Source: Macrostomum lignano
Lineage: Eukaryota
Reading direction: 5' to 3'
Assembly: GCA_002269645.1 (NCBI GenBank)
Contig: NIVC01004910.1
Span: 1 to 31,783 of the forward strand
Length of the DNA: 31,783 bases
Shown: piece by piece, positions 1-31,783 of the stretch
Layout of the letters: each line of letters starts with the position of its first letter
Position numbering within the stretch: position 1 is the stretch's first letter
Notes under the pieces: model-generated
What the model was told of the DNA's origin: nothing
Database searches by the model: none
What the model saw: the letters and a program-made list of their open reading frames with translations, nothing else
Position numbers and translations under genes: made by a program

Positions 1-708
1 TCTCCTCTCGTTTCTCTCCTCTCTGCACTCTCATCTTTACCCTCTCTTTCTCCTCACTACTTTCTTCTCTTAAATCTCTGATCTCTGATCTTTCATCTCT
101 CTTCTCTCACCTCTCTCCTCTCTTGCCTCTCTTCTATTGCCTCTGTACGCTCTTATCCCTCCTTTCTCTTTCTCTCCTGTCTCCTCTCTGCTATCTCATA
201 TCTCCTCTCTCATATCCTCTCCCTTCATCTCTCTCTCCTCTTCTCTTCTCTCTCCTTTTCCCGCCTTACTCCCCTCTTCTCTCCATCTGTCATTCTAATT
301 CTCTCCACTCATTTCTACTCTGTTTACTATCATCTCATCTCTCTCCTCTCTCCTCTCTCTCTTCTCCTTTCGCTTCTCTCTCCTCTCTCTCCTCTCATCT
401 CTACTACCTTATTTATATCTTCTCCCTGGTCTTTTGTCTCTACTCTCTCTCTTGTCTCCTTTCTCCCCTCTTTTCTCCTCTCTTCTCTCTCCTCTCTCCC
501 CTCCTCTCTCATCTCATCTCCTCATCTCACTCTTTCTTTCTCCTCTACTCTCCCCTCTCTTCTATTGCCTCTGTACGCTCTTATCCCTCATCTATTCTCT
601 CTCCTATCATCTCCAATCTGTCATGTCTAATCTCTCCACTCAATTTTACTCTATTTTCTATCATCTCTTCTCTCTTCTCTTTTCAGTCTTCTCTTTACTC
701 TCTTCTCT
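1..708 (+). repeat. Complex polypyrimidine (CT-rich) tract, 5'-truncated by window
   Basis: Very G-poor; ends in shared CTCTTTACTCTCTTCTCT. Confidence 0.95.
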
Positions 709-1101
709 GACTGATTGAAGATGCCAAATCCATCAAAATCCTCTCCGCGAAGCAAAAATCCTGTCTGTGCAACTAAAAACCATCGAAATCCTCTCAGTGA
801 AACTGGACTCCTTCGAAATCCTCTCCTTGAAACCTGAATCCATCAAAATTGTTTCCATAAAACAGAAATCAATCATAAATTATCTCAGCGAAACAGAAAG
901 CCTCTCCGTGAAGCTGAACATGATCGAAATCCTCTCCGTGAAACTGAACACCATGGAAATCCTTTCGTGAAACTGAACATCATCGAAATCCTCTCCACGA
1001 AACAGAAATCTTCTCCGTCAGAATTTAAACATTGAAATCGTCTCCGCTAAACTTGACTTAATCGAATTTTTTCCGTCAAACAACTCAACTCGCCAGATTC
1101 A
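709..1101 (+). repeat. Degenerate 30/20-bp minisatellite (GAAACTGAACACCATCGAAATCCTCTCCGT / GAAACAGAAATCCTCTCCGT)
   Basis: GAAATCCTCTCC core recurs at 20-30 bp spacing. Shorter versions at ~2145-2316, 5289-5436, 7921-8137, 10741-10950, ~15520-15609, 17798-18024, 26034-26174. Confidence 0.9.
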
Positions 1102-1135
1102 TTAGGGTTAGGGTTAGGGTTAGGGTTAGGGTTAG
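1102..1135 (+). repeat. Interstitial telomeric repeat (TTAGGG)5TTAG
   Basis: Read directly. Confidence 0.97.
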
Positions 1136-2053
1136 AACTACGCACAGCTTCGTGTTAAAAGGCACAGATAAAAATATTGAACTAATTGAATCAATTCATT
1201 GCGCAACCGATTTCTCAGTCAGTCAGTATCAGCCTCAGGTAAAGTTAACAAAAACATTGCGCAATCTAAATCAACCTCCAATACACAGCAGCAGTGAGAA
1301 GTTGAACCCTCCCCCAGCTTTATCTATTACGTCTCGCAAAACTGAGTACAATCTTTGCAGCAAGTTAAAAGTATGGAAATAGTTTTTCAAATGCTGTGCT
1401 TTTTCTTTTCATATTTAAAGCAAACAACTTATATCCCCGAACTCAGCGTTGCAAGATCTTCCAGCAATATAAGTTTCTCCTATCAAAGTTTAAAACTCGA
1501 GGAACAGTTAGCGTTTGAAACTGTCTGATTTATAGCATTGAAGTATCGAGTGTACGTTCACTGCCTGCTTGCAAGTTGATGCATTGAATTTCAATGTCCA
1601 ACAAATACACAGGGCTGCCCATTGAAAGGCAGGAAAACTTATCAGTAGCCATATCATTGCGCAATTATCTATAAGTCAGCCAGTGAGCCAGGGTCCAAGT
1701 GTACACACGCAGCCACTGAGAACGCTCCCACCCCCACTGGAAGAAAATACACTACAGAGATAGGGAAAAGTTGTGGCGCAATCACTAAAAATTCGTGCAT
1801 TTTTCAGCTCCAAGCAGAAAGAGGGGACAATTAAGATTATCAAAGGTCAAGATTCGTTTTCTGCTTTTTTGAGGATCTTAGAAATTAAAATTTCAGAATT
1901 AAAATAGCCTATAGCCGACCTCGGATAATTTCCAATCTTCCCATATAAGTTTCAACGCTGAGTTGCACTATTCAAGGAGGAGTTGTCGAAATGACAGACA
2001 GACATACAGACAGACATACAGACAGACAAACAACGCGTCAACTTTAGTATATA
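1132..2053 (-). mobile_element. Non-autonomous Helitron-like element H1 (subfamily I, one internal monomer)
   Basis: Minus strand: TATATACTAAAGTTGACGCG start, (TGTC/TGTA)n at ~1993-2028, imperfect terminal palindrome then CTAA. No TIRs, TSDs or coding capacity. Class assignment is by structure only. Confidence 0.6.
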
Positions 2054-2316
2054 CGAGGCCAACTCCTCCTTCGGAGAAGAAAGGGGAAGAACTCCAATCA
2101 GCGGAATTCCATTCCCTGAACTCCATCAGCGGAATCCCATTTTCCAACACCTCTCCGCGCAACAGAAATCGTCTCCGTGAAACTGAACACTATCGAAATC
2201 CTCTCCGTGAAACTGAACACCATCGAAATATTCTCCGCGAAATAGAAATCCTCTCCGTGAAACTGGACTAAATCGAAATTTCTACGTCAAACAGCCCAGC
2301 TCTCAGAATTCATTGG

Positions 2317-2338
2317 TTAGGGTTAGGGTTAGGGTTAG
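2317..2338 (+). repeat. Interstitial telomeric repeat (TTAGGG)3TTAG
   Basis: Read directly. Confidence 0.95.
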
Positions 2339-3290
2339 AGCTACACACAGCTGCGTGTTGAAAGGCGCCGTAAAAACATTGAACCAATTAAATTGCGCAA
2401 CTTATTTCTCAGGCAGTCAGTATCAGCGTCAGTTAAAGTTAACAAAAAGATTGCGCAATCTAAATCAGCCCTCCAATACACAGCAACCGACCCCCTTCCA
2501 ATACGCAGTGCAGCTAGAAATTGAACCCCCCCTACTAACTATTGGGGGGGGGGTCGGTCGAACCCCCATTGAACTCCAAAATGAGCAAAATCTTTGCAGA
2601 AAGCTAAAAGTATGAAAATCTTTTCTTGAATGCTGTGAATTTAATTTTCATATTTAAAGCAAAAAACTTATATCCCCGAACTCATCGCAGCAAGATCTTT
2701 CCAGCAATATAAGTCTCTCCTCTCTAAGTTCAAAACTCGAGCAACAGTTAGTGTTTGAAACTTTCTGATTTTAAGCATTGAAATATCGAGTGTACGTTCA
2801 CTGCCTGCTAAAGATGCTCGCAAGTTTATGCATAAAAATGCACTGAATTTCACTGTGCAAAAAATACACAGGGCTGCCTGTTAAAAAACAGAACACAAAT
2901 AGTTGCGCAATTGTCTATAAAGTCAGCCAGTGAGCCAGGGTCCGATTGTACACACGCCGCCAATGAGAACGCGCCCATTCCCCCACAGGAGAGAAAACGC
3001 ACTGGCGACATAGGAAAAAGTTGTGGCGTAATCACTCAAAATTTATGCCAATTTTCAGCTCCGAGCAGAAAGAGGGACAAATAAGATTATCAAAGGTCAG
3101 AATTGCTGCTTTCTGCTTTTTTAGGGATCTTAAAATTTAAAAATGAAAGATTAAAATAGCCTAAAGCCATCCTCGGAAAATTTGCAGTTTTCCCATATAA
3201 GTTTCAACGCTGAGTTGCAAGTATTCTAGGAGGAGTTATCGAACTGACATACATACAGACAAACAACGCACCACTTTTAGTATTAAGAGA
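2335..3290 (-). mobile_element. Helitron-like element H2 (subfamily II)
   Basis: Minus-strand 5' TCTCTTAATACTAAAAG; 3' palindrome ACACGCAGCTGTGTGT (2343-2358), 4 nt, then CTAA. Subfamily II diagnostics on + strand: GCCTAAAGCCATCCTCGG and GCAAGTATTCTAGGAGGAGTTAT. Confidence 0.62.
2343..2358 (-). terminator. Putative Helitron 3' terminal palindrome (replication-termination hairpin), representative copy
   Basis: Minus strand ACACGCAGCTGTGTGT is self-complementary apart from one G.T wobble (an A.C mismatch on + strand), followed by AGCT-CTAA. A variant ACACGAAGCTGTGCGT occurs in other copies. Canonical Helitrons end with a 16-20 nt palindrome shortly before CTRR. Confidence 0.55.
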
Positions 3291-3694
3291 GATTGTCTAT
3301 AAAGTCAGCCAGTGAGCCAGGGTCCAATTGTACACACGCCGCCAATGAGAACGCGCCCATTCCCCCACAGGAGAGAAAATGCACTGGCGACATAGGAAAA
3401 AGTTGTGGCGTAATCACTCAAAATTCATGCAAATTTTCAGCTCCGAGCAGAAAAAGGGTACAATTAAGATTATCAAAGGTCAGAATTGCCGTTTTCTGCT
3501 TTTTTAGGGATCTTAAAATGTAAAATAAAAGATTAAAATAGCCTAAAGCCATCCTCGGAAAATTTGCAGTTTTCCCACATAAGTTTCAACGCTGACTTGC
3601 AAGTATTCTAGGAGGAGTTATCCAACAAACACACACACACACAGACAAACAACGCACCAGTTTTAGTATTAAGAGATAGAGAGAGAGAGATAGA
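3291..3694 (-). mobile_element. 3'-truncated subfamily II element (intact 5' end)
   Basis: Repeats the 5'-proximal ~400 bp of H2 and abuts the H2 5' end with no spacer. Confidence 0.6.
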
Positions 3695-3695
3695 T

Positions 3696-4122
3696 GCCTG
3701 CTAATGTGGGAGGCTCGCACGTTTATTCATTGAATTTCACTGCCGCCTCAACACCCCTAACCCGGGGGGGGGGTTCTATTTGCTCCATTGCTCAGTGCAC
3801 ACAGTTGTGGCGCAATCACAAAAAAATTGTCAACCGGCCCGGCTACACCCCCTCAGTTAAAAGAATACACTACACAGATAGGCCAGCTGTTGTGGCGTAA
3901 TCATTAAGAGTTGCGCAAGGTAATCGTAATCCCTATTGTTATACTATTTCTGCTTTTTTAGGGATCTTAAAATATGAAAATGCAGAATTTTAATCGCCTA
4001 AAGCCATCCTCGGACAATTTTCAGTTTTCCCATATAAGTTTCAACACTGACTTGCAAGTAGTCTGGGAGGAGTTATGCAACAAACGGACGCACAAACATC
4101 GCACCAACTTTAGTATTAGGAG
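3696..4122 (-). mobile_element. 3'-truncated, strongly diverged element (third variant)
   Basis: Intact 5' end (TCTCCTAATACTAAAG on minus). Body only partly alignable (AATACACTAC-AGATAGG; GTTGTGGCG-AATCA twice). Confidence 0.5.
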
Positions 4123-4129
4123 AGTGGAA

Positions 4130-4146
4130 CTCCTCCTTCGGAGGAG
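4130..4146 (-). terminator. Second conserved hairpin CTCCTCC-GAA-GGAGGAG (candidate secondary terminator), representative copy
   Basis: Perfect 7-bp stem also at 6831, 9586, 11902, 15052, 18977, 22098, 24874, 27127, 29585; loop variant at 16764; one stem mismatch at 2063. Always ~7-10 nt from the next element 5' end. Confidence 0.45.
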
Positions 4147-4285
4147 AAAGGGGAAGAACTCCCATCACCGGAATTCCATTCCCTGAAATATCCATCAACT
4201 GAAATTCCATGTCTTGAACCCTATCTTCCAAATCGTCTCCAAATTCTTTAGAAAACCTTTCAAAGACCATAGCTCAAAGACTCTC

Positions 4286-5288
4286 ACGTCTCTCATATCT
4301 ACTCTCTCCACTCTGTGCTATTATCGTGACTCTCTTCTCTCTCCTCTCTCTCATCTCATCTCTACCCGTACTCCCTTATTTATGTTTTCTCCCTCGTCTT
4401 TCGTCTGTACCCTCTCCTGTCTCTTGTCTCCTCTCTTCTCTCATATCTCTCCTCTTCACTTCTGTCTCCTGTCTTCTCTCTTCTCTCTTATCTCTCCCTC
4501 TTCTCTCCTCTTTTATATGTCATCCCTATTCACTTATCTATCGTCTCTCTTAACCCTCTCTCTCTTCTCTTTTCTTTCCTCTCTGCTCTCATTTCTCATA
4601 TCTCATATACGCTCTCACACTCCACTTACTTGTCTCCAATCTTTCTTTCCTCCTTTCCACTTTTCCCTGTCTCTTCTCTTCTCTCTTTTCTATCCTCTCC
4701 ATTCTCTCTTTTCTCCTCCCTTGCTCCTTTTATCTTCTCCCCTCTCTTCTCTAATCTCTTCTCTCTTCTCTCTTATGTTCTCACTCATCTCTTATCATCG
4801 CATCTCTCATCTCTCCTCTCCTCACTACTTTCCTCTCTTAACTCTCTTATCTATTTCATCTCTCTCCTCTCTCCTCTTTCTCTTCTCCTCTCGCTTCTTC
4901 TCTCGCTTCTCTCTCCTATCTCTCCTCTCATCTCTACTACCGTATTTATATCTTCTAACTGGTCCTTCGTCTCTACTCTCTCCTTTCTCCTTTCTCCCCT
5001 CTTTTCTCCTTTCTTGTCTCTCCTGTCTCCCCTCCTCTCTCATCCCTCATCCCCTCATCTCACTCTTTCTTTCTCCTCTACTCTCCCCTCTCTTCTATTT
5101 TCTCTGTACGCTCTTATCCCTAATCTATTTTCTCTCCTCTCTCCTCTTTTCTACTCTCTCCCTCTTCGTTCCCGCCTAAATCCCCTCTTCTCTCCAATCT
5201 GTCATGTCTAATATCTCCACTTATTTCTACTCTGTTTTCTATCATCTCATCTCTCTTCTGCTTTCATTTTCTCTTTACTCTTTTCTCT
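4286..5288 (+). repeat. Complex CT-rich tract
   Basis: Near-identical to 9736-10740. Confidence 0.95.
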
Positions 5289-5436
5289 GACTGATTGAAG
5301 ATGCCAAATCCATCAAGATCCTCTCCGCGAAGCAGAAATCCTGTCCGTGCAACTGAAAACCATCGAAATTCTCTCTTTTAAACTGGACTCAATCGAAATT
5401 TTCTCCGTCAAAAAAATAAATATCAGGATTCATTGG

Positions 5437-5470
5437 TTAGGGTTATTGTTAGGGTTAGGGTTAGGGTTAA
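5437..5470 (+). repeat. Telomeric repeat with TTATTG variant: TTAGGG TTATTG (TTAGGG)3 TTAA
   Basis: Read directly. Confidence 0.95.
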
Positions 5471-6822
5471 AGCTACACAGCTGCGTGTTCAAATAAAAAT
5501 TGAACCAATTGAATCAATTGATTGCGCAACCGATTTCTCAGTCAGTCAGTATCAGTCTCAGTTAAAGTTAACAAAAAGATTGCGCAATCTAAATCAACCC
5601 TCCAGTACACAGAGACCGACCTCTTTTCAATACGCAGTAGCAGTTAGAAATTGAACGCCGAACTGTTGGGGGCATTGAACCAAAAAATGAGTACAATCTT
5701 TGCATAAAGCTAAAAGTATGGAAATAGTTTTTTTGATGCTGCTCTTTTAGTCTTTACATTTATAGCAAACAATTTATATCCTCGAACTCAGCGTTGCAAG
5801 ATCTTTTCAGCAGTATAAGTATCTTCTCTTAAAGTTTAGAACTCGAAGAGCAGTTAGCGTTTGAAAGTTCCCGTTTTAAGGCATTGAAATATCGCGTGTA
5901 CGTTCACTGCCTTCCAAAGAGGCTCGCAAATTTATTCATTCATTACACAGGCTGGCTATTACACAGGGCAGCCTATTGAAAGGCACAGATAATAAAACAA
6001 ATTGATGGCGCAACCGATTTCACAGTCAGTCAGTATCAGTCTCAGTTAAAGTTAAGAAAAACATTGCGCAATCTAAATCAACCCTCCAATACACAGCGCC
6101 CGACCGCCTTCCACTACGCAGTGGCAATTAGCAATTGAACCCCCCAAATTTATCTCTGACCTATCGCAAAAATAAGTACAATCTTTGCAGCAAGTTAAAA
6201 GTAAAAGTAATAAAATCGTTTTTTGAATGCTGTGCTTTTAATTTTTACAGTTAAAGCAAACAACTTATATCCCTGAACTCAGCGTTGCAAGATCTTTCCA
6301 GCAATATAAGTCTCTCCTCTCAAAGTTCAAAAATCGAGCAACAGTTAGCATTTGAAACTTTCTGATTTAAAGCATTGAAATATCGAGTGTACGTTCACTG
6401 CCTGCTAGAGAGGCTCGCAAATTGATGCATTGAATTTCACTGTCCGCCAGTTAGCTAGGGTCCAAGTGTACACACGCCGCCACTGAGAACGCTCCTATCC
6501 CCCACTGGAGAGAAAAACACTGCCAAGTTAGCAAAATTTTATGGCGCAATCACTTAAAATTCATGCAGATTTTCAGCTCCAAGCAGAAAGAGGGGACAAT
6601 TAAGATTATCAAAGGTCAAGACCGCCGTTTTCTGCTTTTTTGAGGATCTTAGAAATTAAAATTTCAGAATTAAAATAGCCTATAGCCGACCTCGGATAAT
6701 TTCCAATCTTCCCATATAAGTTTCAACGCTGAGTTGGCACTATTCAAGGAGGAGTTGTCGAAATGACAGACACACAGACAGACAGACAGACAGACAAACA
6801 ACACGTCAACTTTAGTATATAC
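5467..6822 (-). mobile_element. Helitron-like element H3 (two internal monomers)
   Basis: Same termini as the other copies. Monomer anchor CGCAACCGATTT at 5525 and 6009 (484 bp apart). Confidence 0.6.
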
Positions 6823-6954
6823 GAGTGGAACTCCTCCTTCGGAGGAGAAAGGGGAAGAACTCCCATCACCGGAATTCCATTCCCTGAAATCCATCAGCTG
6901 AAACTCCATGACTTGAATCCCATCTTCCAAATCATCTCCAAAACCTCTGTAAAG

Positions 6955-7920
6955 CCTTTTGCTCTCCTCTTGCCCTCTTATCTCTACAGTGTAGTCTCTT
7001 ATCTTTTCTCTCTAATCTGCTTTTCATCTCTAGTCTCTCATCTCTGCTCTCTCTTCTTTGCTATCTTATATCTAGTCTCTCCTTTCTCTCCTCTCATCTC
7101 TACTCCCTTATGTATCTCTTCTCCCTCGTCTTTCGTCTGTACCCTCTCTTGTCTCGTGTCTCCTCTCTTCTCTCTTATCTCTCTCTCTTCTCTCCTCTCT
7201 CATATGTCATCTCTACTCACTTATCTATCGTCTCTCTTTACCCTCTCTCTTCTCTCTGCTCTCATTTCTCATATCTCATATACGCTCTCACACTCTACTT
7301 TCTTGTCTCCCATCTTTCTTTCCTCCTTTCCACTATCCCCTGTCTCTTCTCTTCTCTCTTTTCTCCTCTCCTTTCTCCTTTCATCTTCTCCCCACTCTTC
7401 TCTAATCTCTAATCTCTTCTCTCTTATGTTCTCACGCATATCTTCTCATCGTATCTCTCATCTCTCCTCTCCTCACTACTTTCCTCTCTTAACTCTCTCA
7501 TCTCTGATCTTTCATCTCTCTCCTCTCTCCTCTCTCTTCTCCTTTCGCTTCTCTCTCCTCCCTCTCCTCTCATCTCTACTACCTTATTTATTTCTTCTCC
7601 CTGGTTTTTTCGTCTCTACTCTCTCCTGTTCTCCTTTCTCCCTCTTTTCTCCTCTCTTCTCTCTCCTGTCTTCCCTCCTCTCTCATCCCTCATCCCCTCA
7701 TCTCACTCTTTCTTTCTCCTCTACTCCCCCTCTCTTGTATCCCTTTGCTATCTCATATCTCCCCTCTCATCTCCTCTCTCTTTCTCTTCTCTCTCCTTCG
7801 TTCCCGCCTACTCCCCTCTTCTCTCCTATCTGTCATGTCTAATCTCTCCACTCATTTCTACTCTGTTTTCTATCATGTCATCTCTCTTCTCTTTTCATTC
7901 TTCTCTTTACTCTCTTCTCT
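6955..7920 (+). repeat. Complex CT-rich tract
   Basis: Shared landmarks CCTCGTCTTTCGTCTGTACCC and CTGTCATGTCTAATCTCTCCACTCA. Confidence 0.95.
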
Positions 7921-8137
7921 GACTGATTGAAGATGCCAAATCCATCAAGATCCTCTCCGCGAAGCAGTCTGTGCAACTGAAAACCATCGAAATCCTCTCT
8001 GTAAAACTGACCATCGAATCCTCTCAGCGAAACAGAAATCCTGTCCGTGAAACTGATAACCATCGAAATTCTCTCTTTAAAACTGGACTCAATCGAAATT
8101 TTCTCCGTCAAAAGATAAAAATATCATGATTCACTGG

Positions 8138-8170
8138 TTAGGGTTATTGTTAGGTTAGGGTTAGGGTTAG
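8138..8170 (+). repeat. Telomeric repeat with TTATTG and TTAGG variants
   Basis: Read directly. Confidence 0.93.
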
Positions 8171-9576
8171 AGCTACACACAGCTGCGTGTCCAAATAAAA
8201 ATTGAAACAATTGAATCAATTGATTGCGCAACAGATTTCTCAGTCAGTCAGTATCAGTCTCAGTTAAAGTTAACAAAAAGATTGCGCAATTTAAATCAAC
8301 CCTCCAGTACACAGAGACCGACCCCTTTTCAATACGCAGTGGCAATTAGAAATTGAACCCCCAACTGTTGGGGCATTGAACTAAAAATGAGTACAATCTT
8401 TGCAGAAAGCTAAAAGTATGGAAATAGTTTTTTTATGCTGTGCTTTTAGTCTTTATATTTAAAGCAAACAATTTATATCCTTGAACTCAGCGTTGCAAGA
8501 TCTTTTCAGCAGTATAAGTCTCTTCTCTTAAAGTTTAGAACTCGAAGAGCAGTAAGCATTTGAAAGTTCCCGTTTTAAAGCATTGAAATATCGAGTGTAC
8601 GTTCACTGCCTGCCAAAGAGGCTCGCAAGTTTATTCATTAATTACACAGGCCGGCTATTACACAGGGCAGCCTATTGAAAGGCACAGATAATAAACAAAT
8701 TGATGGCGCAACCGATTTCACAGTCAGTCAGTATCAGTCTCAGTTAAAGTTAACAAAAACATTGCGCAATCTAAATCAACCCTCCAATACACAGCAGCAG
8801 TGAGAAGTTAAACCCTCCCCCAACTTTATCTATTACGTCTCGCAAAACTGAGTACAATTTTGCAGAAAGTTAAAAGTATGGAAATACTTTTCAAATGCTG
8901 TGCTTTTTCTTTTCATATTTAAAGCAAACAACTTATATCCGAACTCTGCGTTGCAAGATCTTTCCAGCAATATAAGTTTCTCCTCTCAAAGTTTAAAACT
9001 CGAGGAACAGTTAGCGTTTGAAATTTACGATTTCCCGACTTCTTGCTAGAGATGCTCGCAAGTTTATTCATTTGAAATTCACTGCCCAGCTAATACACAG
9101 GCCGATAATAAACCAATTTGAATCTCGGCCCCACGTTCTATCTGTTTATAAAACAGCTATGTACACTCAGCCCAAGCCCAACCCCCCGTTCCGGGGGAAT
9201 CATTAAATTTAACCCAACCCCCCGACACGCGGGCGGTTTTATTTGCAATTGAACCCAGAACACGCGCACCCACCACCCCTCAATACACAGCGGCCCGCGG
9301 GCGGAGGTTGGGGTGGCTATTTTTACAAACTGGCTGCAGCCCCAGGCAGAGTGGCAAAAGAAGGTTATTGGGGGTCAAAAAGGCAGTTTTCTGCTTTTTT
9401 GAGGATCTTAGAAATTAAAATTTCAGAATTAAAATAGCCTATAGCCGACCTCGGATAATTTCCAATCTTCCCATATAAGTTTCAACGCTGAGTTGGCACT
9501 ATTCAAGGAGGAGTTGTCGAAATGACAGACAGACAGACAAACAACGCGTCAACTTTAGTATAGATAGATAGATAGA
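8167..9576 (-). mobile_element. Helitron-like element H4 (two monomers plus unique GC-rich insert)
   Basis: Minus-strand 5' TCTATCTATCTATCTATACTAAAG; 3' palindrome then CTAA. Monomer anchors at 8227 and 8707. Confidence 0.62.
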
Positions 9577-9735
9577 CGAGTGGAACTCCTCCTTCGGAGG
9601 AGAAAGGGGAAGAACTCCCATCACCGGAATTCCATTCCCTGAAATATCCATCAACTGAAATTCCATGTCTTTAACCCTATCTTCCAAATCGTCTCCAAAT
9701 TCTTTAGAAAACCTTTCAAAGACCATAGCTCAAAG

Positions 9736-10740: not shown

Positions 10741-10950
10741 GACTGATTGAAGATGCCAAATCCATCAAGATCCTCTCGCGCGAAGCAGAAATCCTGTCCG
10801 TGCAACTGAAAACCATCGAAATCCTCTCCGTGAAACTGGACTCCTTCGAAATCCTTTCCGTGAAACTGAAAACCATCGAAATTCTCTCTTTTAAACTGGA
10901 CTCAATCGAAATTTTCTCCGTCAAAAAAAATAAATATCAGGATTCATTGG

Positions 10951-10984
10951 TTAGGGTTATTGTTAGGGTTAGGGTTAGGGTTAA
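10951..10984 (+). repeat. Telomeric repeat with TTATTG variant
   Basis: Read directly. Confidence 0.95.
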
Positions 10985-14120: not shown

Positions 14121-14123
14121 GGG

Positions 14124-19836: not shown

Positions 19837-20228
19837 GACTGATTGAAGATGCCAAATCCATCAAGATCCTCTCCGCGAAGCAAAAATCCTGTCTGTGCAA
19901 CTAAAAACCATCGAAATCCTCTCAGTGAAACTGGACTCCTTCGAAATCCTCTCCTTGAAACTGAATCCATCAAAATTGTTTCCATAAAACAGAAATCAAT
20001 CATAAATTATCTCAGCGAAACAGAAAGCCTCTCCGTGAAGCTGAACATGATCGAAATCCTCTCCGTGAAACTGAACACCATGGAAATCCTTTCGTGAAAC
20101 TGAACATCATCGAAATCCTCTCCACGAAACAGAAATCTTCTCCGTCAGAATTTAAACATTGAAATCGTCTCCGTTAAACTTGACTTAATCGAATTTTTTC
20201 CGTCAAACAACTTAACTCGCCAGATTCA
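19837..20228 (+). repeat. Degenerate 30/20-bp minisatellite
   Basis: Near-identical to 709-1101. Confidence 0.9.
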
Positions 20229-20262
20229 TTAGGGTTAGGGTTAGGGTTAGGGTTAGGGTTAG
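20229..20262 (+). repeat. Telomeric repeat (TTAGGG)5TTAG
   Basis: Read directly. Confidence 0.97.
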
Positions 20263-22089: not shown

Positions 22090-22255
22090 GAGTGGAACTC
22101 CTCCTTCGGAGGAGAAAGGGGAAGAACTCCCATCACCGGAATTCTATTCCCTGAAATATCCATCAACTGAAATTCCATGTCTTTAACCCTATCTTCCAAA
22201 TCGTCTCCAAATTCTTTACAAAATCTTTCAAAGACCATAGCTCAAAGACTCTTAC

Positions 22256-23367
22256 GTCTCTCATATCTACTCTCTCCTCTCTTCGCTATTATCGTGACTC
22301 GCTTCTCTCTCCTCTCTCTCATCTCATCTCTACCCCTACTCTCTTATTTATCTCTACTCCCTTATTTATCTCTTCTCCCTCGTCTTTCGTCTGTACCCTA
22401 TCCTGTCTACTCTCCTATCTTCTATCTTATCTCTCCCCTTTTCTCTCCTCTCTCATATCTAATCTCTAATCACTTATCTATCGTCTCCGCTCTACTTTCT
22501 CTCTTCTTTTTTCTCTCTTCTCTCTGCTCTCATTTCTCGTATCTCTTATACGCTCTCACCCTCTCCTTTCTTATCTCCCATCTTTCTTCCCTCCTTTCTA
22601 CTGCATCACCTGTCTCCTCTCTTCTCTTTTCTCTCCTCTCCATTCTCTCTTCTCTACTCTCATCTCCCCTCATCTCTTCTCTAATCTCTAATCTCTTCTC
22701 TCTCTTATTTTCTCACTCATCTCTTTTCTCATTGCATCTCTCATCTCTCCTCTCTCTCTCTCTCCTCTCATCTGTACTATCTTTTTTATCTCTTCTCCCA
22801 GGTCTTTCAAATTTACTCTCTCCTGTCTCCTCTCTCCCCTCGTCTTTCCTCTCTCATATCTCTTCTCTACTCACTTATATATTCTCTCTCCTCTGCTCCC
22901 CTTTTACACTTTCCTATATGCTCTCACTCTCACCCTCCCCTTTCTTATCTGCTGTTTTTACACTCCTTTCTACCACCTGTCTCCTCTCGTTTCTCTCCTC
23001 TCTGCACTCTCATCTTTACCCTCTTCTTTCTCCTCACTACTTTCTTCTCTTAAATCTCTGATCTCTGATCTTTCATCTCTCTCCTCTCACCTCTCACCTC
23101 TCTCCTCTCTTTCCTCTCTTCTATTGCCTCTGTACGCTCTTGTCCCTCCTTTCTTCTCCATCCTGTCTCCTCTCTGCAATCTCATATCTCCTCTCTCATA
23201 TCCTCTCCCTTCATCTCCTCTCTCCTCTTCTCTTCTCTCTCCTTCGTTCCCGCCTTACTTTCCTCTTCTCTCCCATCTGTCATGTCTAATCTCTCCACTC
23301 ATTTCTACTCTGTTTTCTATCATCTCATCTCTCTTCTCTTTTCATTCTTCTCTTTACTCTCTTCTCT
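22256..23367 (+). repeat. Complex CT-rich tract (longest)
   Basis: Third-lineage landmarks. Confidence 0.95.
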
Positions 23368-23906
23368 GACTGATTGAAGATGCCAAATCCATCAAGATCC
23401 TCTCCGCGAAGCAGAAATCCTGTCCGTGCAACTGAAAACCATCGAAATCCTCTCCGTGAAACTGGACTCCTTCGAAATCCTCTCCTTGAAACTTAAATCC
23501 ATCAAAATCGTCTCCATAAAACAGAAATCAATCATAAATTATCTCCGCGAAACAGAAATCCTCTCCGTGAAGCTGAACATCATCGAAATCCTCTCCGTGA
23601 AACTGAACACCTTCGAAATCCTCTCCGTGAAACTGAACACCTTCGAAATCCTCTCCTTGAAACTTAAATCTATCAAAATCGTCTCCATAAAGCAGAAATC
23701 AATCATAAATTTAACTCCGCGAAACAGAAATCCTCTCCGTGAAGCTGAACATCATCAAAATCCTCTCCGTGAAACTGAGCACCATCGAAATCCTCTCCAC
23801 GAAACAGAAATCCTCTTTGTCAAAATTAAAACATTGAAATCGTCTCCGCTAAACTGGACTCAATCAATTTTTTCCGTCAAACAACTCAACTCTCCGGATT
23901 CATTGG
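23368..23906 (+). repeat. Degenerate 30/20-bp minisatellite, expanded
   Basis: Longest copy, with an internally duplicated block (AAACTTAAATC-ATCAAAATCGTCTCCATAAA twice). Confidence 0.9.
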
Positions 23907-23928
23907 TTAGGGTTAGGGTTAGGGTTAG
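23907..23928 (+). repeat. Telomeric repeat (TTAGGG)3TTAG
   Basis: Read directly. Confidence 0.95.
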
Positions 23929-24865
23929 AACTACGCACAGCTTCGTGTTAAAAGGCACTGATAAACTATTGAACTAATTGAATCAATTCATTGCGCAACC
24001 GATTTCACAGTCAGTCAGTATCAGTCTCAGTTAAAGTTAACAAAAACATTGCGCAATCTAAATCAACCCTCCAATACAAAGCAACTGACCCCCTTCCTAT
24101 ACACAGCGCCAGTTGGAAGTCGAAACCCCCAACTTTATCTCTCACCTCTCGCCAAAATGAGTACAATCTTTGCAGAAAGTTTAAAGTATGGAAATAGTTT
24201 TTGCAATGCAGAGCTTTTAGTTTTCATATTTGAAGCAAACAATTTATATCCCTGAAATCAGCTTTGCAAGTTCTTTCCAGCAATATAAATTTTTTCTCTC
24301 AAAGTTAAAAACTCGAGCAACAGTTTGCGTTTGAAACTTTCTGATTTAAAGCATTGAAATATCGATTGTACGTTCACTGCCTGCTAAAGAGGCCCGCAAG
24401 TTTATGCATTGAATTTCAACGTTCAACAAAATCACAGGGCTGCCTATTGAAAATTAGAACACAAATCTTTGCGCAATTGTCTATACAGTCAGCCAGTGAG
24501 CCAGGGTCCGATTGTACACAGGCAGCCATTTAGAACGCCCCATCCCCCCACTGGAGAGAAAATACACTGCAGAGATAGGGAAAAGTTGTGGCGCAATCAC
24601 TTGAAATTCATGCAAATTTTCAGCTCCAAGCAGAAAGAGGGGACAATTAAGATTATCAAAGGTCAAGACCGCCGTTTTCTGCTTTTTTGAGGATTTTAGA
24701 AATTAAAATTTCAGAATTAAAATAGCCTATAGCCGACCTCGGATAATTTCCAATCTTCCCATATAAGTTTCAACGCTGAGTTGCCACTATTCAAGGAGGA
24801 GTTGTCGAAATGACAGACAGACACACAGACAGACAGACAAACAACGCGTCAACTTTAGTATATAC
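23925..24865 (-). mobile_element. Helitron-like element H11
   Basis: Same termini. 5'-proximal half is near-identical to H13 (identical ORF translations at 24469-24690 and 29181-29402). Confidence 0.6.
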
Positions 24866-25025
24866 GAGTGGAACTCCTCCTTCGGAGGAGAAAGGGGAAG
24901 AACTCCCATCACCGGAATTCCATTCCCTGAATATCCATCAACTGAAATTCCATGTCTTGAACCCTATCTTCCAAATCGTCTCCAAATTCTTTACAAACCT
25001 TTCAAAGACCATAGCTCAAAGACTC

Positions 25026-26033
25026 TTACGTCTCTCATATCTACTCTCTCCTCTCTTCGCTATTATCGTGACTCGCTTCTCTCTCCTCTCTCTCATCTCA
25101 TCTCTACCCTACTCCTTATTTATCTCTCTCCCTCGTCTTTCGTTGTACCCTCTCCTGTCTCTTGTCTCCTCTCTTCTCTCATATCTCTCCTCTTCACTTC
25201 TGTCTCCTGTCTCCTCTCTTATCTCTTCCTCTTCTCTCCTCTCTCATATGTCATCTCTCCTTACTTATCTATCGTCTCTCTTAACCCTCTCTCTCTCTTC
25301 TCTTTTCTCTCCTATCTGCTTCATTTCTCATATCTCATATACGCTCTCACACTCTACTTTCTTGTCTCCATCTTTCTTTCCTCCTTACCACTATCCCTGT
25401 CTCTTCTCTTCTCTCTTTTCTATCCTCTCCATTCTCTCTTCTCTCCTCTCCTTTCTCTTTTCATCTTCTCCCCTCTCTTCTCTAATCTCTAATCTCTTCT
25501 CTCTTATGTTCTCACTCATCTCTTTTCTCATCGCATCTCTCATCTCTCCTCTCCTCACTACTTTCCTTCTCTTAACTCTCTTATCTCTGATCTTTCATCT
25601 CTCTCCTCTCTCCTCTCTTTCTTCTCCTTTCGCTTCTCTCTCCTCTCTCTCCTCTCATCTCTACTACCTTATTTATATCTTCTCCCTGGTCTTTCTTCTG
25701 TACTCTCTCCTGTCTCCTTTCTCCCCTCTTTTCTCCTCTCTTCTCTCTCCCCTCCTCTCTCATTTCTCATCCCCCATCTCACTTTTTCGTTCTCCTCTAC
25801 TCTCCCCTCTCTTCTATTTCCTCTGTATGCTCTTATCCCTCATCTATTCTCTCTCCTATAATCTCTCTTTTCTCCCTTGCTATCTCATATCGCCCTCTCA
25901 TATCCTCTCTCCTTCGTCCCGCCTTACTCCCCTCTTCTCTCCATCTGTCATGTCTAATCTCTCCACTCATTTCTACTCTGTTTCTATCATCTCATCTCTT
26001 TCTTTTTTCATTCTTCTCTTTACTCTCTTCTCT
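25026..26033 (+). repeat. Complex CT-rich tract
   Basis: Shared landmarks. Confidence 0.95.
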
Positions 26034-26174
26034 GACTGATTGAAGATGCCAAATCCATCAAGATCCTCTCCGCGAAGCAGCAATCTTGTCTGTGCAACTG
26101 AAAACCATCGAAATCTGTGAAACTCAATCGAAATTTTCTCCGTCAAAAAAGAATAAAATATCAGGATTCATTGG

Positions 26175-26208
26175 TTAGGGTTATTGTTAGGGTTAGGGTC
26201 AGGGTTAG
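26175..26208 (+). repeat. Telomeric repeat with TTATTG and TCAGGG variants
   Basis: Read directly. Confidence 0.93.
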
Positions 26209-27120
26209 AGCTACACACAGCTGCGTGTCCAAATAAAAAATTGAACCAATTGAATCAATTGATTACGCAACCGATTTCTCAGTCAGTCAGTATCAGTCTC
26301 AGTTAAAGTTAAAAAAGATTGCGCAATCTAAATCAACCCTCCAATCCACAGCAGTAGTGAGAAGTTGAACCCTCCCCCAACTTTATCTATTACGTCTTGC
26401 AAAACTGAGTACAATATTTGCAAAAAGTTAAAAGTATGGAAATAGTTTTTCAAATGCTGTGCTTTTTCTTTTCATATTTAAAGCAAACAATTTATATCCC
26501 CGAACTCAGCGTTGCAAGATCTTTCCAGAAATATAAGTCTCTTCTCTCAAAGTTTAAAACTCGAGGAACAGTTAGCGTTTGAAACTGTCTGATTTATAGC
26601 ATTGAAGTTTGGAGTGTACGTTCACTGCCTGCTTGCAAGTTGATGCATTGAATTTCAATGTCCAACAAATACACAGGGCTGCCCATTGAGAGGCAGGAAA
26701 ACTTATCAGTAGCCATATCATTGCGCAATTATCTATACAGTCAGCCAGTAAGCCAGGGTCCAAGTGTACACACGCAGCCACTGAGAACGCTCCCACCCCC
26801 CACTGGAAAGAAAATACACTACAGAGATAGGGAAAGTTGTGGCGCAATCACTAAAAATTCGTGCATTTTTTCAGCTCCAAGCAGAAAGAGGGGACAATTA
26901 AGATTATCAAAGGTCAAGACCGCCGTTTTCTGCTTTTTTGAGGATCTTAGAAATTAAAATTTCAGAATTAAAATAGCCTATAGCCGACCTCGGATAATTT
27001 CCAATCTTCCCATATAAGTTTCAACGCTGAGTTGGCACTATTCAAGAGGAGTTGTCGAAATGACAGACAGACAGACAAACAATGCGTCAACTTTAGTATA
27101 TGTAGATAGATAGATAGAGA
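26205..27120 (-). mobile_element. Helitron-like element H12
   Basis: Minus-strand 5' TCTCTATCTATCTATCTACATATACTAAAG; 3' palindrome then CTAA. Confidence 0.6.
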
Positions 27121-27285
27121 GTGGAACTCCTCCTTCGGAGGAGAAAGGGGAAGAACTCCCATCACCGGAATTCCATTTCCTGAAATATCCATCAACTGAA
27201 ATTCCATGTCTTTAACCCTATCTTCCAAATCGTCTCCAAATTCTTTACAAAATCTTTCAAAGACCATAGCTCAAAGACTCTCAAG

Positions 27286-28242
27286 TCTCTCATATCTCCT
27301 CTCTCCTCTCTCTCATCTCATCTCTACCCTGCTCCCTTATTTATCTCTTCTCCCTCGTCTTTCGTCTGTACCCTCTCCTGTCTCTTGTCCCGTCTCTTCT
27401 CTCATATCTCTCCCTCTTCTCTCCTCTCTCATATGTCATCTCTACTCACTTATCTATCGTCTCTCTTAACCCTCTCTGTCTCTTCTCTTTTCTCTTCTCT
27501 CAGCTCTCATTTATCATATCTCATATACGCTCTCACACTCTACTTTCTTGTCTCCCATCTTTCTTTCCTTCTTTCCACTATCCCTGTCTCTTCTCTTCTC
27601 TCTTTTATATCCTCTCCATTCTCTCTTTTCTCCTCTCTTGCTCCTTTGATCTTCTCCCCTCTCTTCTCTAATCTCTAATCTCTTCTCTCTTATGTTCTCA
27701 CGCATCTCTTCTCATCGCATCTCTTATCTCTCCTCTCCTCACTACTTTCCTCTCTTAACTCTCTCATCTCTGATCTTTCATCTCTCTCCTCTCTCCTCAC
27801 TCTCTTCTCCTTTCGCTTCTCTCTCCTCTCTCTCCTCTCATCTCTACTACCTTATTTATATCTTCTCCCTGGTCTTTCGTCTGCTCTCTCTCCTGTCTCC
27901 TTTCTCCCCTCTTTTCTCTTCTCTTCTCTCTCCTTTCCTCTCTCATCTCTCATCCCTCATCTCACTCTTTCTTTCTCCTCTACTCTCCCCTCTCTTCTAT
28001 TTCCTCTGTACGCTCTTATCCCTCATCTATTCTCTCTCCTATTATCTCTCTTGTCTCCCTTTGCTATCTCATATCTCCCCTCTCATCTCCTCTCTCCTCT
28101 TCTCTTCTCTCTCCCTCTTCGTTCCCGCCTTACTCCCCTCTTCTCTCCCATCTGTCATGTCTAATCTCTCCATTCATTTCTACTCTGTTTTCTATCATGT
28201 CATCGCTCTTCTCTTTTCATTCTTCTCTTTACTCTCTTCTCT
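27286..28242 (+). repeat. Complex CT-rich tract
   Basis: Shared landmarks. Confidence 0.95.
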
Positions 28243-28643
28243 GACTGATTGAAGATGCCAAATCCATCAAGATCCTCTCTGCGAAGCAGAAATCTTGTCT
28301 GTGCAACTGAAAACCATCGAAATCCTCTCCGTAAAACTGGACTCCTTCGAAATCCTCTCATTAAAACTTAAATCCATCAAAATGGTCTTCATAAAACAGA
28401 AATCAATTATAAATTATCTCCGCGAAACAGAAATCCTCTCCGTGAAGCTGAACATCATCGAAATCCTCTCTTCGTGAAACTGAACATCATCGAAATCCTC
28501 TCTTCGTGAAACTGAACATCATCGAAATCCTCTCCACGAAACAGAAATCCTCTCTGTCAAAATTAAAACATTGAAATCGTCTCCGCTAAACTGGACTCAA
28601 TCGAATTTTTTTCCGTCAAACAACTCAACTCCGGATTCATTGG
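28243..28643 (+). repeat. Degenerate 30/20-bp minisatellite
   Basis: Contains tandem ~32-bp units TTCGTGAAACTGAACATCATCGAAATCCTCTC. Confidence 0.9.
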
Positions 28644-28664
28644 TTAGGGTTAGGGTTAGGGTTA
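28644..28664 (+). repeat. Telomeric repeat (TTAGGG)3TTA
   Basis: Read directly. Confidence 0.95.
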
Positions 28665-29522
28665 AACTACGCACAGCTTCGTGTTAAAAGGCGCTGATAA
28701 AAATATTGAACTAATTGAATCAATTCATTGCGCAACCGATTTCACAGTCAGTCAGTATCAGTCTAAGTTAAAGTTAACAAAAACATTGCGCAATCTAAAT
28801 CAACCCTCCAATACACAGCAGCAGTGAGAAGTTGAACTCTCCCCCCAACTTTATCTATTACGTCTCGCAAAACTGAGTACAATTTTTGCAGAAAGTTAAA
28901 AGTATGGAAATAGTTTTTTCAATGCTGTGCTTTTTCTTTTCATATTTAAAGCAAACAATTTATATCCCTGAAATCAGCTTGCAAGTTCTTTCCAGCAATA
29001 TAATTTTTCTCTCAAAGTTAAAAACTCGAGCAACAGTTTGCGTTTGAAACTTTCTGATTTAAAGCATTGAAATATCAATTGTACGTTCACTGCCTGCTAA
29101 AGAGGCCCGCAAGTTTATGCATTGAATTTCAAGGTTCAACAAAATCACAGGCTGCCTATTGAAAATTAGAACACAAATCTTTGCGCAATTGTCTATACAG
29201 TCAGCCAGTGAGCCAGGGTCCGATTGTACACAGGCAGCCATTTAGAACGCCCCATCCCCCCACTGGAGAGAAAATACACTGCAGAGATAGGGAAAAGTTG
29301 TGGCGCAATCACTTGAAATTCATGCAAATTTTCAGCTCCAAGCAGAAAGAGGGGACAATTAAGATTATCAAAGGTCAAGACCGCCGTTTTCTGCTTTTTT
29401 GAGGATCTTAGAAATTAAAATTTCAGAATTAAAATAGCCTATAGCCGACCTCGGATAATTTCCAATCTTCCCATATAAGTTTCAACGCTGAGTTGCACTA
29501 TTCAAGGAGGAGTTGTCGAAAT

Positions 29523-29554
<32 letters not shown>

Positions 29555-29576
29555 ACGCGTCAACTTTAGTATATAC
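28662..29576 (-). mobile_element. Helitron-like element H13
   Basis: Same structure; one base lost at the telomeric junction (GTTAAACTAC). Confidence 0.6.
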
Positions 29577-29740
29577 GAGTGGAACTCCTCCTTCGGAGGA
29601 GAAAGGGAAGAACTCCCATCACCGGAATTCTATTCCCTGAAATATCCATCAACTGAAATTCCATGTCTTTAACCCTATCTTCCAAATCGTCTCCAAATTC
29701 TTTACAAAATCTTTCAAAGACCATAGCTCAAAGACTCTCA

Positions 29741-30448
29741 AGTCTCTCATATCTCCTCTCTCCTCTCTCTCATCTCATCTCTACCCCTGCTCCCTTATTT
29801 ATCTCTTCTCCCTCGTCTTTCGTCTGTACCTTCTCCTGTCTTCTGTCTCCTCTCTTCACTCTTATCTCTCCCTCTTCTCTCCTCTCTCATATGTCATCTC
29901 TACTCACTTATCTATCGTCTCTCTTAACCCTCTCTCTCTCTTCTCTTTTCTCTTCTCTCTGCTCTCATTTCTCATATTTCATATACGCTCTGACACTACT
30001 TTCTTGTCTCCCATCTTTCTTCCTCCTTTTCACTATCCCCTGTCTCTTCTCTTCTCTCTTTTCTATTCTCTCCATTCTCTCTTTTCTCCTTTCCTTGCTC
30101 CTTTCATCTCTCTCCTCTCTCCTCACTCTCTTCTCCTTTCGCTTCTCTCTCCTCTCTCTCCTCTCATCTTTACTACCTTATTTATATCTTCTCCCTAGTC
30201 TTTCGTCTGTACTCTCTCCTGTCTCCTCTCTCCTCCTCTCTCATCTCATCTCCTCATCTCCTCATCTCACTCTTTCTTTCTCCTCTACTCTCCCCTCTCT
30301 TCTATTGCCTCTGTACGCTCTTATCCCTCATCTATTCTCTCTCCTATCATCTCCAATCGTCATGTCTAATCTCTCCACTCAATTTACTCTGTTTTCTATC
30401 ATCTCTCTCTCTCTCTCTCTTTTCAGTCTTCTCTTTACTCTCTTCTCT
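29741..30448 (+). repeat. Complex CT-rich tract (short lineage)
   Basis: Near-identical to 12061-12762. Confidence 0.95.
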
Positions 30449-30840
30449 GACTGATTGAAGATGCCAAATCCATCAAATCCTCTCCGCGAAGCAAAAATCC
30501 TGTCTGTGCAACTAAAAACCATCGAAATCCTCTCAGTGAAACTGGACTCCTTCGAAATCCTCTCCTTGAAACCTTAATCCATCAAAATTGTTTCCATAAA
30601 ACAGAAATCAATCATAAATTATCTCCGCGAAACAGAAAGCCTCTCCGTGAAGCTGAACATGATCGAAATCCTCTCCGTGAAACTGAACACCATGGAAATC
30701 CTTTCGTGAAACTGAACATCATCGAAATCCTCTCCACGAAACAGAAATCTTCTCCGTCAGAATTTAAACATTGAAATCGTCTCCGCTAAACTTGACTTAA
30801 TCGAATTTTTTCCGTCAAACAACTCAACTCGCCAGATTCA
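30449..30840 (+). repeat. Degenerate 30/20-bp minisatellite
   Basis: Near-identical to 12763-13155. Confidence 0.9.
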
Positions 30841-30865
30841 TTAGGGTTAGGGTTAGGGTTGTTAG
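30841..30865 (+). repeat. Telomeric repeat (TTAGGG)3 TTG TTAG
   Basis: Read directly. Confidence 0.93.
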
Positions 30866-31783
30866 AACTACGCACAGCTTCGTGTTAAAAGGCACAGATA
30901 AAAATATTGAACTAATTGAATCAATTCATTGCGCAACCGATTTCACAGTCAGTCAGTATCAGCCTCAGGTAAAGTTAACAAAAGATTGCGCAATCTAAAT
31001 CAACCCTCCAATCCAGCAGCTAGTGAGAAGTTGAACCCTCCCCCCAACTTTATCTATTACGTCTTGCAAAACTGAGTAACAATATTTGCAAAAGTTAAAA
31101 GTATGGAAATAGTTTTCCAAATGCTGTGCTTTTTCTTTTCATAGTTAAAGCAAACAACTTATATCCCCGAACTCAGCGTTGCAAGATCTTGCCAGCAATA
31201 TAAGTTTCTCCTCTCAAAGTTTAAAACTCGAGGAACAGTTAGCGTTTGAAACTGTCTGATTATAGCATTGAAGTATCGAGTGTACGTTCACTGCCTGCTT
31301 GCAAGTTGATGCATTGAATTTCAATGTCCAACAAATACACAGGACTGCCCATTGATAGGCAGGAAAACTTATCAGTAGCCATATCATTGCGCAATTATCT
31401 ATAAAGTCAGCCAGTGAGCCAGGGTCCAATTGTACACACGCCGCCAATGAGAACGCGCCCATTCCCCCACAGGAGAGAAAAATGACTGCGACATAGGAAA
31501 AAGTTGTGGCGTAATCACTCAAAATTTATGCCAATTTTCAGCTCCGAGCAGAAAGAGGGACAATTAAGATTATCAAAGGTCAAGACCGCCGTTTTCTGCT
31601 TTTTTAGGGATCTTAAAATTGAAAATGAAAGATTAAAATAGCCTAAAGCCATCCTCGAAAATTTGCAGTTTTCCCATATAAGTTCCAATCTTCCCATATA
31701 AGTTTCAACGCTGAGTTGGCCACTATTCAAGGAGGAGTTGTCGAAAATGACAGACAGACACACAGACAGACAGACAAACAACG
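30862..31783 (-). mobile_element. Helitron-like element H14 (subfamily I/II chimera, runs off window)
   Basis: Subfamily I monomer, subfamily II segment ~31420-31684, then subfamily I end. Window stops just after the (GACA)n tract. Confidence 0.55.

Follow-up and report, generated by a model that had tools for sequence, protein, structure and literature searches.

The contig NIVC01004910.1 of the Macrostomum lignano assembly GCA_002269645.1 (C4910 below) carries short blocks of the repeat CCCTAA, and the question raised by this locus is whether they mark a chromosome end, a target of insertion or a sequence carried by a mobile element. The window analyzed is the whole contig of 31,783 bp, and the genome-wide searches covered the 764-Mb M. 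lignano assembly (G000) with its 5,269 contigs; C-numbers denote contigs of this assembly and L-numbers genomic loci inspected from it. Our analysis revealed that the window is a head-to-tail array of non-coding Helitrons, each of which harbors a telomere-type repeat along with a minisatellite and a long purine tract. We consider it very probable that these are non-autonomous Helitrons of the canonical type, delimited by TC..ATACTAAAG on the 5' side and by a hairpin (hairpin 2) plus CTCG on the 3' side, with the telomere repeat as internal cargo and a RepHel protein presumably acting in trans. A first-pass annotation of the same DNA, made from the sequence alone, had already reported minus-strand Helitron-like elements with telomere repeats in head-to-tail order, and these observations are borne out.

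The 5' end of the element is TC(T/C/TA-rich)n-ATACTAAAG, and its 3' end is the hairpin CTCCTCC-GAA-GGAGGAG followed by TTCCACTCG or TTGGCCTCG. Between them the order is fixed: module A, which includes a (TGTC)n run, module B with a weak palindrome (palindrome 1) at its end, (CCCTAA)2-6, a 30-bp minisatellite, a GA tract of 0-0.86 kb and a conserved block of approximately 170 bp. The 3' end was searched for genome-wide as the second hairpin with the 45 bases that follow it, which gave 874 exact sites, and the flanks were judged on the first 100 of these. The majority of the 100 run past TTCCACTCG or TTGGCCTCG into a 5' end, either of the same family or, among the sites listed, of at least five sister subfamilies. 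Approximately 12 of the 100 enter unrelated DNA directly after ...CACTCG|T. Such solo 3' ends were found at C1:476380, C31:618695, C67:235819, C186:405793, C235:61215, C235:65860, C300:169443, C319:219331 and C294:44464, and with the variant CTTG|T on C225 and C292. The hairpin has a constant 7-bp stem and a 3-nt loop of variable sequence (GAA, AGA, AGC, ATC), folds with -6.8 kcal/mol and lies 9 nt from the element end, while the terminus itself is CTCG, less often CTTG. The long unit ending at hairpin 2 had been proposed as the one that spreads, and the dispersed copies do end there.

For the opposite end, the 5' core was followed outward genome-wide, and it was found as host A|TC at no fewer than 10 loci and as A|TT at four; CTAG|TC junctions were also seen, the neighbor there being a different canonical Helitron that has a hairpin and ends in CTAG. 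In L018 an array opens with TCTCTCTATATACTAAAG right after a host 30-bp satellite, with no cassette upstream, and in L038 low-complexity DNA directly precedes the 5' end. Overall, an A closes the 5' flank in 14 of the clear junctions, and a T opens the 3' flank in all 11 solo ends. Compared by eye, the 5' end (TCTCTATATACTAAAG) does not read as an inverted copy of the 3' end (GGAGGAGTTCCACTCG), and there is no 5' hairpin. A 5' TC, present here at a minimum of 10 independent loci, and a short 3' hairpin, expected approximately 10 nt from the end and found at 9 nt, are features of a canonical Helitron, and together with the T of the 3' flank and the RepHel-coding partners described below they support the Helitron identity given by the first-pass annotation. 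Inside the window the 5' end follows four contexts other than a hairpin, namely a shortened module A, a shortened module B (body H7), a variant module and a complete module A, which indicates that it behaves as a recurrent breakpoint. In L038 (3255-3320; G000:C2695, minus strand), a complete 5' end is preceded by two tandem 5'-end stubs of approximately 60 bp (ATACTAAAG..GTTCGATAACTTC), and it looks as if initiation or joining had been repeated there.

All repeat features of the window lie on the minus strand. They comprise 16 5' cores of the ATACTAAAG type (ATACTAAA(G/A)(T/C)TG..) plus one element clipped by the contig end, 12 copies of the second hairpin (CTCCTCCGAAGGAGGAG) and 13 telomere-type blocks, (CCCTAA)2-6, the longest with 6 repeats. 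A search with telomeric 18-mers gave 22 matches, compared with none in 100 shuffles. Each telomere block is followed by a minisatellite of 30-bp units, and purine (GA) tracts of 143-860 nt are present in 12 of the 13 units and make up 25% of the window. No RNA family reached the Rfam gathering score in the window, and ARAGORN found no tRNA there. Counted by bodies, 13 full-length A+B bodies have an intact 5' core; 12 of them end in the palindrome and a telomere block, and H7 lacks both. One further body has lost its 5' end at the contig end and kept its telomere block, and there are three 5' stubs (rc 15040, 27668 and 28115). The tally of 14 full and 3 partial elements given earlier agrees with this recount, and both exceptions pointed out at the time, H7 and the cassette without GA tract after element H2, are real. 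Under the true boundaries the window consists of 11 complete units (1,712-3,150 bp) and two clipped by the contig ends. A single 3' hairpin and a single telomere block belong to each unit, and three units also hold additional 5' stubs or a shortened body.

Genes for RepHel were found beside such arrays. At least 298 candidate Rep domains are present genome-wide, and matches to PF14214 (Rep) lie 3-8 kb downstream of array pieces, on the same strand, on no fewer than seven contigs, namely C1, C659, C4584, C32, C109, C2383 and C413. The Rep group beside arrays has open frames of approximately 227-250 aa interrupted by introns, and matches to PIF1 (PF05970) without stops lie 2.3-2.7 kb beyond Rep; in L021 the gene is directly readable from its start (MPKRGRG...), with introns and Rep exons. 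The RepHel gene is preceded, in this order, by the 5' end, module A, two B-like modules, a 131-nt block and a degenerate telomere-like stretch, TACCCTAAC(C/T)(C/A)CAACCCCC, in the same relative place as the internal block of the non-coding units. A second 131-nt block follows approximately 9 kb downstream of each RepHel start. The coding copy on C1 has its 5' end at about 829,790, Rep at 825,550-826,065, PIF1 at 822,922-823,296 and the next hairpin-2 end at 819,050-819,111; measured from the nearest 5' end to the nearest hairpin 2, the element would span approximately 10.7 kb, and non-coding units flank it on both sides in the same orientation. The first-pass annotation had suggested a search for a RepHel element sharing the 5' end and the 3' palindrome. 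RepHel does sit behind the same 5' end and module A in the coding copies, which were read in part; the nearest 3' end downstream is hairpin 2. Judging from these sequences, the termini are likely common to coding and non-coding elements, and the latter are presumably moved in trans by the intron-bearing RepHel genes of the same family. The annotation had also named what would speak against its reading, namely the lack of both solo or dispersed copies and a RepHel partner, or a best match to another family with different boundaries; none of these situations applies, and solo ends, dispersed copies and a likely partner were found. A separate, intron-less Helitron family was also encountered (L025-L032, e.g. 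G000:C111:320157-323699), with uninterrupted RepHel frames of 1,558-1,693 aa in at least seven copies, one of which is annotated as an M. lignano hypothetical protein (94% identity to the queried copy).

The units of the window, with coordinates on the contig, are as follows.

1-2056, minus strand: U12; 5' end 2034-2056, telomere block 1102-1131 (5 repeats), GA tract 82-593, 3' part lost at the contig start.
2057-4123, minus strand: U11, corresponding to H2 of the first-pass annotation with its two 5' stubs; body A*-A-A-B, 5' cores 4100-4116, 3653-3669 and 3267-3283, palindrome 2339-2358, telomere block 2317-2334, 3' hairpin 2063-2079 followed by TTGGCCTCG.
4124-6824, minus strand: U10; 5' core 6802-6818, telomere block 5449-5466, GA tract 4383-5177, 3' hairpin 4130-4146.
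6825-9579, minus strand: U9; 5' core 9545-9561, telomere block 8155-8166, GA tract 7076-7859, 3' hairpin 6831-6847.
9580-11895, minus strand: U8; 5' core 11869-11885, telomere block 10963-10980, GA tract 9838-10629, 3' hairpin 9586-9602.
11896-15045, minus strand: U7, with two bodies; 5' cores 15024-15040 (H7) and 14093-14109, telomere block 13156-13191 (6 repeats), GA tract 12070-12643, 3' hairpin 11902-11918.
15046-16757, minus strand: U6; 186-bp 5' stub (core 16728-16744), then full 5' end 16542-16558, telomere block 15616-15627, GA tract 15251-15393, 3' hairpin 15052-15068.
16758-18970, minus strand: U5; 5' core 18948-18964, telomere block 18025-18042, GA tract 16994-17736, 3' hairpin 16764-16780 (loop variant AGA).
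18971-22091, minus strand: U4; 5' core 22069-22085, telomere block 20229-20258 (5 repeats), GA tract 19145-19704, 3' hairpin 18977-18993.
22092-24867, minus strand: U3; 5' core 24845-24861, telomere block 23907-23924, GA tract 22484-23306, 3' hairpin 22098-22114.
24868-27120, minus strand: U2; 5' core 27083-27099 with a (TCTA)n run before it, telomere block 26187-26198, GA tract 25076-25845, 3' hairpin 24874-24890.
27121-29578, minus strand: U1, the reference anatomy, read 5' to 3' on the minus strand; 5' end 29556-29578, module A, including (TGTC)n, as far as 29188, module B 28665-29188 with the weak palindrome 28665-28684 at its end, telomere block 28644-28661, minisatellite of 30-bp units 28305-28535, GA tract 27327-28186, conserved block of about 170 bp with the 3' hairpin 27127-27143, then TTCCAC.
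29579-31783, minus strand: U0; 5' end lost at the contig end, telomere block 30841-30858, GA tract 29752-30329, 3' hairpin 29585-29601.

Some units deserve comment. The cassette of U11 (2057-2316) is short and lacks the GA tract, and its module B plus cassette has copies of 98-100% identity on at least 40 contigs. U11 also holds a 382-bp tandem duplication of module A (2910-3676, 93% identity), each copy of which begins exactly at the 5' end TCTCTTAATACTAAAA; before it (3690-4123) lies a chimera of the 5' half of module A, unrelated sequence and a piece from the 5' part of module B. H7 (approximately 14110-15040) is shortened within module B, and the next 5' end follows directly. U6 is the shortest and most diverged unit, with a GA tract of only 143 nt. 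Module B of U4 is partially duplicated, and U3 has the longest minisatellite of the window (23414-23810, approximately 13 units of 30 bp). Two to three copies of a palindromic octamer, TTGCGCAA, were found in module B of each unit (e.g. 2899-2910, 1253-1264 and 1195-1206; also in L018 and L021). It often occurs as ATTGCGCAAT, which as a sequence would resemble a site of the bZIP/C-EBP type, and module A has the variants TTGCGCCACAAC and TTACGCCACAAC.

A different origin had been proposed in the first-pass annotation, with palindrome 1 plus a CTRR motif as the terminus: a short Helitron of approximately 0.93 kb landed by telomeric repeats, read through its terminator, captured the cassette with its hairpin and spread as concatemers. 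The constant order of 5' end, body, palindrome, CTAA and cassette fits this account, and bypass of the terminator with transduction of the 3' flank is established Helitron behavior (PMC13085455). However, solo short elements ending at palindrome 1, as the account expects, were not encountered: the palindrome has 359 exact copies genome-wide, all 100 of those listed continue with CTAA or TTAA, CCCTAA repeats and CCAATGAAT, and none of the 100 ends at it. Its stem is weak, folding no better than shuffled sequence and barely folding at all in the common variant, and the supposed CTRR, CTAA, is the first hexamer of the telomere repeat, often degenerate (CTCTAA, TTCTAA, CTTTAA). The sole arrangement seen that resembles the postulated short element, and a point in its favor, is at C392:562975-563032, where the palindrome and CTAA(CCCTAA)3CC abut the following 5' end (ATATATACTAAAG) with nothing left of the minisatellite, the GA tract or the 3' hairpin; it is a rare deletion form. 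Furthermore, the family in general has hairpin 2 as its 3' end, and so do several sister subfamilies; since these have different bodies, the hairpin is older than the arrangement of the telomere cassette. The RepHel-coding relatives have a telomere-like stretch at the matching place, and neighboring units are too dissimilar for one concatemer event. Capture by read-through is an unlikely explanation and could apply only as an ancient origin. Another possibility is insertion targeted to telomeres, as proposed for Paramecium, so that the array would have been built by one insertion after another at a chromosome end or close to it. CCCTAA repeats of the same polarity do follow every terminator-like module, including a second, unrelated 131-nt module of the genome that always precedes them with varying junctions (GATGAAA|CCCTAA, ..ATGGTAA|CCCTAA, ..ATGGTAG|CCCTAA), and the motif AATGAA follows the repeats in coding and non-coding copies alike; the Paramecium precedent also comes with satellites and a pyrimidine tract (PMC13085455). 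Nevertheless, arrays start at TC..ATACTAAAG and finish at hairpin 2, in both cases against non-telomeric DNA, and no telomere repeat adjoins the solo 5' and 3' ends. In the young subfamily (as in U11) most copies share the block CTCTAA(CCCTAA)3CC, and the others have one repeat more or less or the point variants CCTTAA, CCATAA and CCTAA. These variants recur on different contigs, and the block is thus passed on with the copy and not created anew whenever an element inserts.

Telomere targeting is also at odds with the recurrent breaks at the 5' end inside the window and with the contig ends, at which a terminal (TTAGGG)n array was looked for and none was found, both ends falling inside units. 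The telomere repeat of M. lignano is TTAGGG; fluorescence in situ hybridization (FISH) gave a telomere signal at chromosome ends only (PMC5068713), a result that says little about the blocks described here, as they measure 12-36 bp. Taken together, such targeting is highly unlikely to have produced the array. A model of a unit flanked by telomere repeats, derived from AATGAA and the Paramecium precedent, was likewise dropped after the solo ends at TC..ATACTAAAG and hairpin 2 had been found. A true telomere or subtelomere is ruled out, given that the longest block has 6 repeats and the contig ends lie within units, and telomerase healing of broken ends was rejected on polarity, the C-strand repeats standing 3' of the module, an argument also made in PMC13085455. 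Finally, the window could be a macrosatellite of the ordinary kind, in which unequal crossing-over and segmental duplication alone multiplied one composite sequence without transposition. The higher-order structure with near-identical 3' halves in the window agrees with this, as does a 99% identical copy of several units on another contig, which may be allelic or stem from genome duplication. Copies of 98-100% identity with different flanks on at least 40 contigs, solo ends in unrelated DNA and RepHel genes linked to arrays do not, and we regard amplification without transposition as extremely unlikely; unequal exchange clearly contributes, but is not the sole process. The telomere repeat is an inherited internal cargo of the Helitron, and not a chromosome end, an insertion target or a freshly transduced flank, and the minisatellite and the GA tract are inherited internal cargo as well.

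Regarding the growth of the arrays, the junctions between the 3' end of one element and the 5' end of the next were found to be precise or nearly so, with neighbors often of different subfamilies. In the window they read CACTCG-TATATAC (five times), CAC-TCTCTATCTA..ATAC, CACTCG-TCTATATATAC and similar, and perfect joints occur elsewhere, e.g. CACTCG|TCTCTCTCTATATAC. Outside the near-identical 3' parts the units of the window are 78-95% similar. Over their 3' 1.45 kb, U0, U4 and U7 share 97-98% identity (U4 and U7 98.3%, U4 and U0 97.4%), and U8 and U10 share 98.5% over their 3' 1.29 kb. Such near-identity within an otherwise 78-95% similar array shows that block duplication or exchange acted inside it, and segmental duplication within the array is evident. 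Approximately 3 kb of the array recur at 99% identity near the end of C1873, with differences mainly in homopolymer lengths; the copy is probably allelic or due to genome duplication. Near-identical units of 1.2 kb stand in runs on contigs such as C38, C102, C245 and C291.

Two routes would fit the precise junctions, and the mechanism is inferred from them. In one, each insertion would leave the host A and the T of its own TC as a new A|T target beside a transposase-bound sequence, and insertion at a resident A|T would put the incoming 3' end exactly against the resident 5' end, which would explain neighbors of unlike subfamily and age. In the other, rolling-circle replication beyond the terminator would yield multimers of equal age, as the runs on C38, C102, C245 and C291 may represent. 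Arrays may grow by one or both routes. Unequal exchange and segmental duplication reshape them afterwards, a step that the near-identical 3' parts in the window show. The rolling-circle concatemers of the first-pass annotation stand as one of these two mechanisms; a single concatemer event is not what neighbors of 78-95% similarity and mixed subfamilies suggest. In L024 (5800-7795; G000:C462, approximately 555,300-557,300), the cassette of a young unit is interrupted by an insertion of approximately 2 kb with direct terminal repeats of approximately 390 bp (TGTAGCGTAAAGC...CTTTACA) and TTGG on both sides. It looks like a small long terminal repeat (LTR) retrotransposon, and the unit is thus older than the insertion. 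Dispersed array pieces are flanked by unrelated minisatellites (L021 6700-7260, L024 8480-9400, L018 4040-4620) with periods, by eye, of approximately 60 bp (aaacctaacgaaagcgacacgacga...), 22 bp (catagaagcgtcatgtaaaaaat) and 30 bp (aatacaggttaatcatccagattacaggaaag), and Helitron arrays of M. lignano tend to sit in or beside other tandem repeats.

A number of points weigh against the interpretation as an array of canonical Helitrons. The array pieces in L021 and L024 start inside module A, and such 5' truncations are not predicted by simple Helitron transposition and are explained by neither route. Support for the A|T target, and for the lack of a target-site duplication, comes from comparing the flanks of different loci, and no filled and empty pair was recovered. 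The RepHel copies were read in part; all of those seen have further family modules before them, and the autonomous ends are taken from the nearest 5' and 3' ends. Lastly, the final four bases, CTCG or CTTG, differ from CTRR, which is a consensus with published exceptions. Paramecium Helitrons, for instance, end in CCAA (PMC13085455), and CTCG is thus treated here as a variant end rather than as an exclusion from the class.

As to what the cargo may mean, it is improbable, though worth stating, that the internal (CCCTAA)n is a relic or a working part of a telomere-linked lifestyle. The family could descend from Helitrons that integrated into the telomeric C-strand, as in Paramecium, with units fused across such targets; alternatively, the repeat and the adjoining purine tract might recruit telomere-binding or other host factors that aid replication, silencing or tolerance. 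Under either possibility, short interstitial telomere repeats and triplex-prone DNA would be spread by approximately a thousand copies through a genome known for karyotype instability. The 131-nt module with its variable CCCTAA junctions leaves room for a deeper link of this Helitron lineage with telomeric sequence. Module B has approximately 1,900 first-pass matches genome-wide, in a genome of which, by published accounts, about 75% consists of repeats. Other repeats were also seen next to telomere-type blocks. One abundant family has the form (CCCTAA)n(CCTAA)CCCTAA-AGCATTGAAATTTCAGTAATTCTCTCTAAGAG... (e.g. C1:777125, C1:800119, C1:1153958, C6:553016, C7:146797, C11:424894 and C12:954086), a third family reads (CCCTAA)n-CTCAAACCAAAATTTTAGGCACAGC (C6:936478 and C7:183171), and the registers of (CCCTAA)2 number 15,659 genome-wide, compared with approximately 2,000 for a backwards control. 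Such blocks beside repeats are thus a general feature of this genome. The Helitron family accounts for many of the short interstitial telomere-type blocks of the assembly, unseen by FISH, and for annotation purposes contigs such as this one should be masked as Helitron arrays and not taken for subtelomeres or misassembled chromosome ends. The boundaries given here are defined by ends, for an abundant Helitron family of a regeneration model.

Compared with known systems, and set against the literature, this is a new Helitron family, an ordinary kind of element with an unusual cargo. The literature search found no paper on Helitrons or telomere-bearing repeats of M. lignano, although a consensus of the family may already exist in Dfam/Repbase, and the C. 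elegans leads followed there gave no telomere repeats inside Helitrons. With canonical Helitrons (Helitron1/HLE1) the family shares the 5' TC after a host A, one subterminal 3' hairpin about 9 nt from the end, a T as 3' flank, the lack of visible terminal inverted repeats, a likely RepHel (Rep + PIF1) partner and head-to-tail arrays in which 3' and 5' ends are joined. It differs from them in its CTCG/CTTG end, its intron-bearing RepHel and its internal (CCCTAA)n, minisatellite and purine tract of up to 0.86 kb.

The Drosophila DINE-1/DINE-TR1 elements and HINEs are similar in being short and non-coding with fixed ends, in carrying a microsatellite and a central tandem repeat of variable copy number, and in the growth of satellite-like arrays and the dispersal of the repeats through the genome. 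Satellite-carrying Helitron-like elements are also found in bivalves. However, DINE-1 and HINEs are of the Helentron/Helitron2 type, which has a hairpin at each end, terminal inverted repeats that are short and asymmetric, and TT as its target (PMC13085455), whereas the ends and, judging from the flanks, the target of the M. lignano family are canonical, and whole elements are arrayed rather than the internal repeat alone. Membership in Helentron, Helitron2 or HINE was ruled out by the non-inverted ends, the lack of a 5' hairpin and the A of the 5' flank, where a TT or T(T/C) target would be expected. A parallel in content exists with the telomere-capping Helitrons of Paramecium, in which C-strand telomere repeats also follow a terminator-like sequence, the non-coding parts are full of minisatellites with a long homopurine/homopyrimidine tract, and derivatives without open reading frames outnumber coding copies (PMC13085455). 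In Paramecium, whose Helitron transposases form their own clade, telomere repeats stand on either side of the element, differ from copy to copy and have been taken as an insertion target at chromosome ends (PMC13085455). In M. lignano, by contrast, the repeat is internal and inherited and the ends adjoin ordinary DNA, and the family described here stands as a metazoan case beside the 2026 Paramecium report linking Helitrons with telomeric repeats (PMC13085455).

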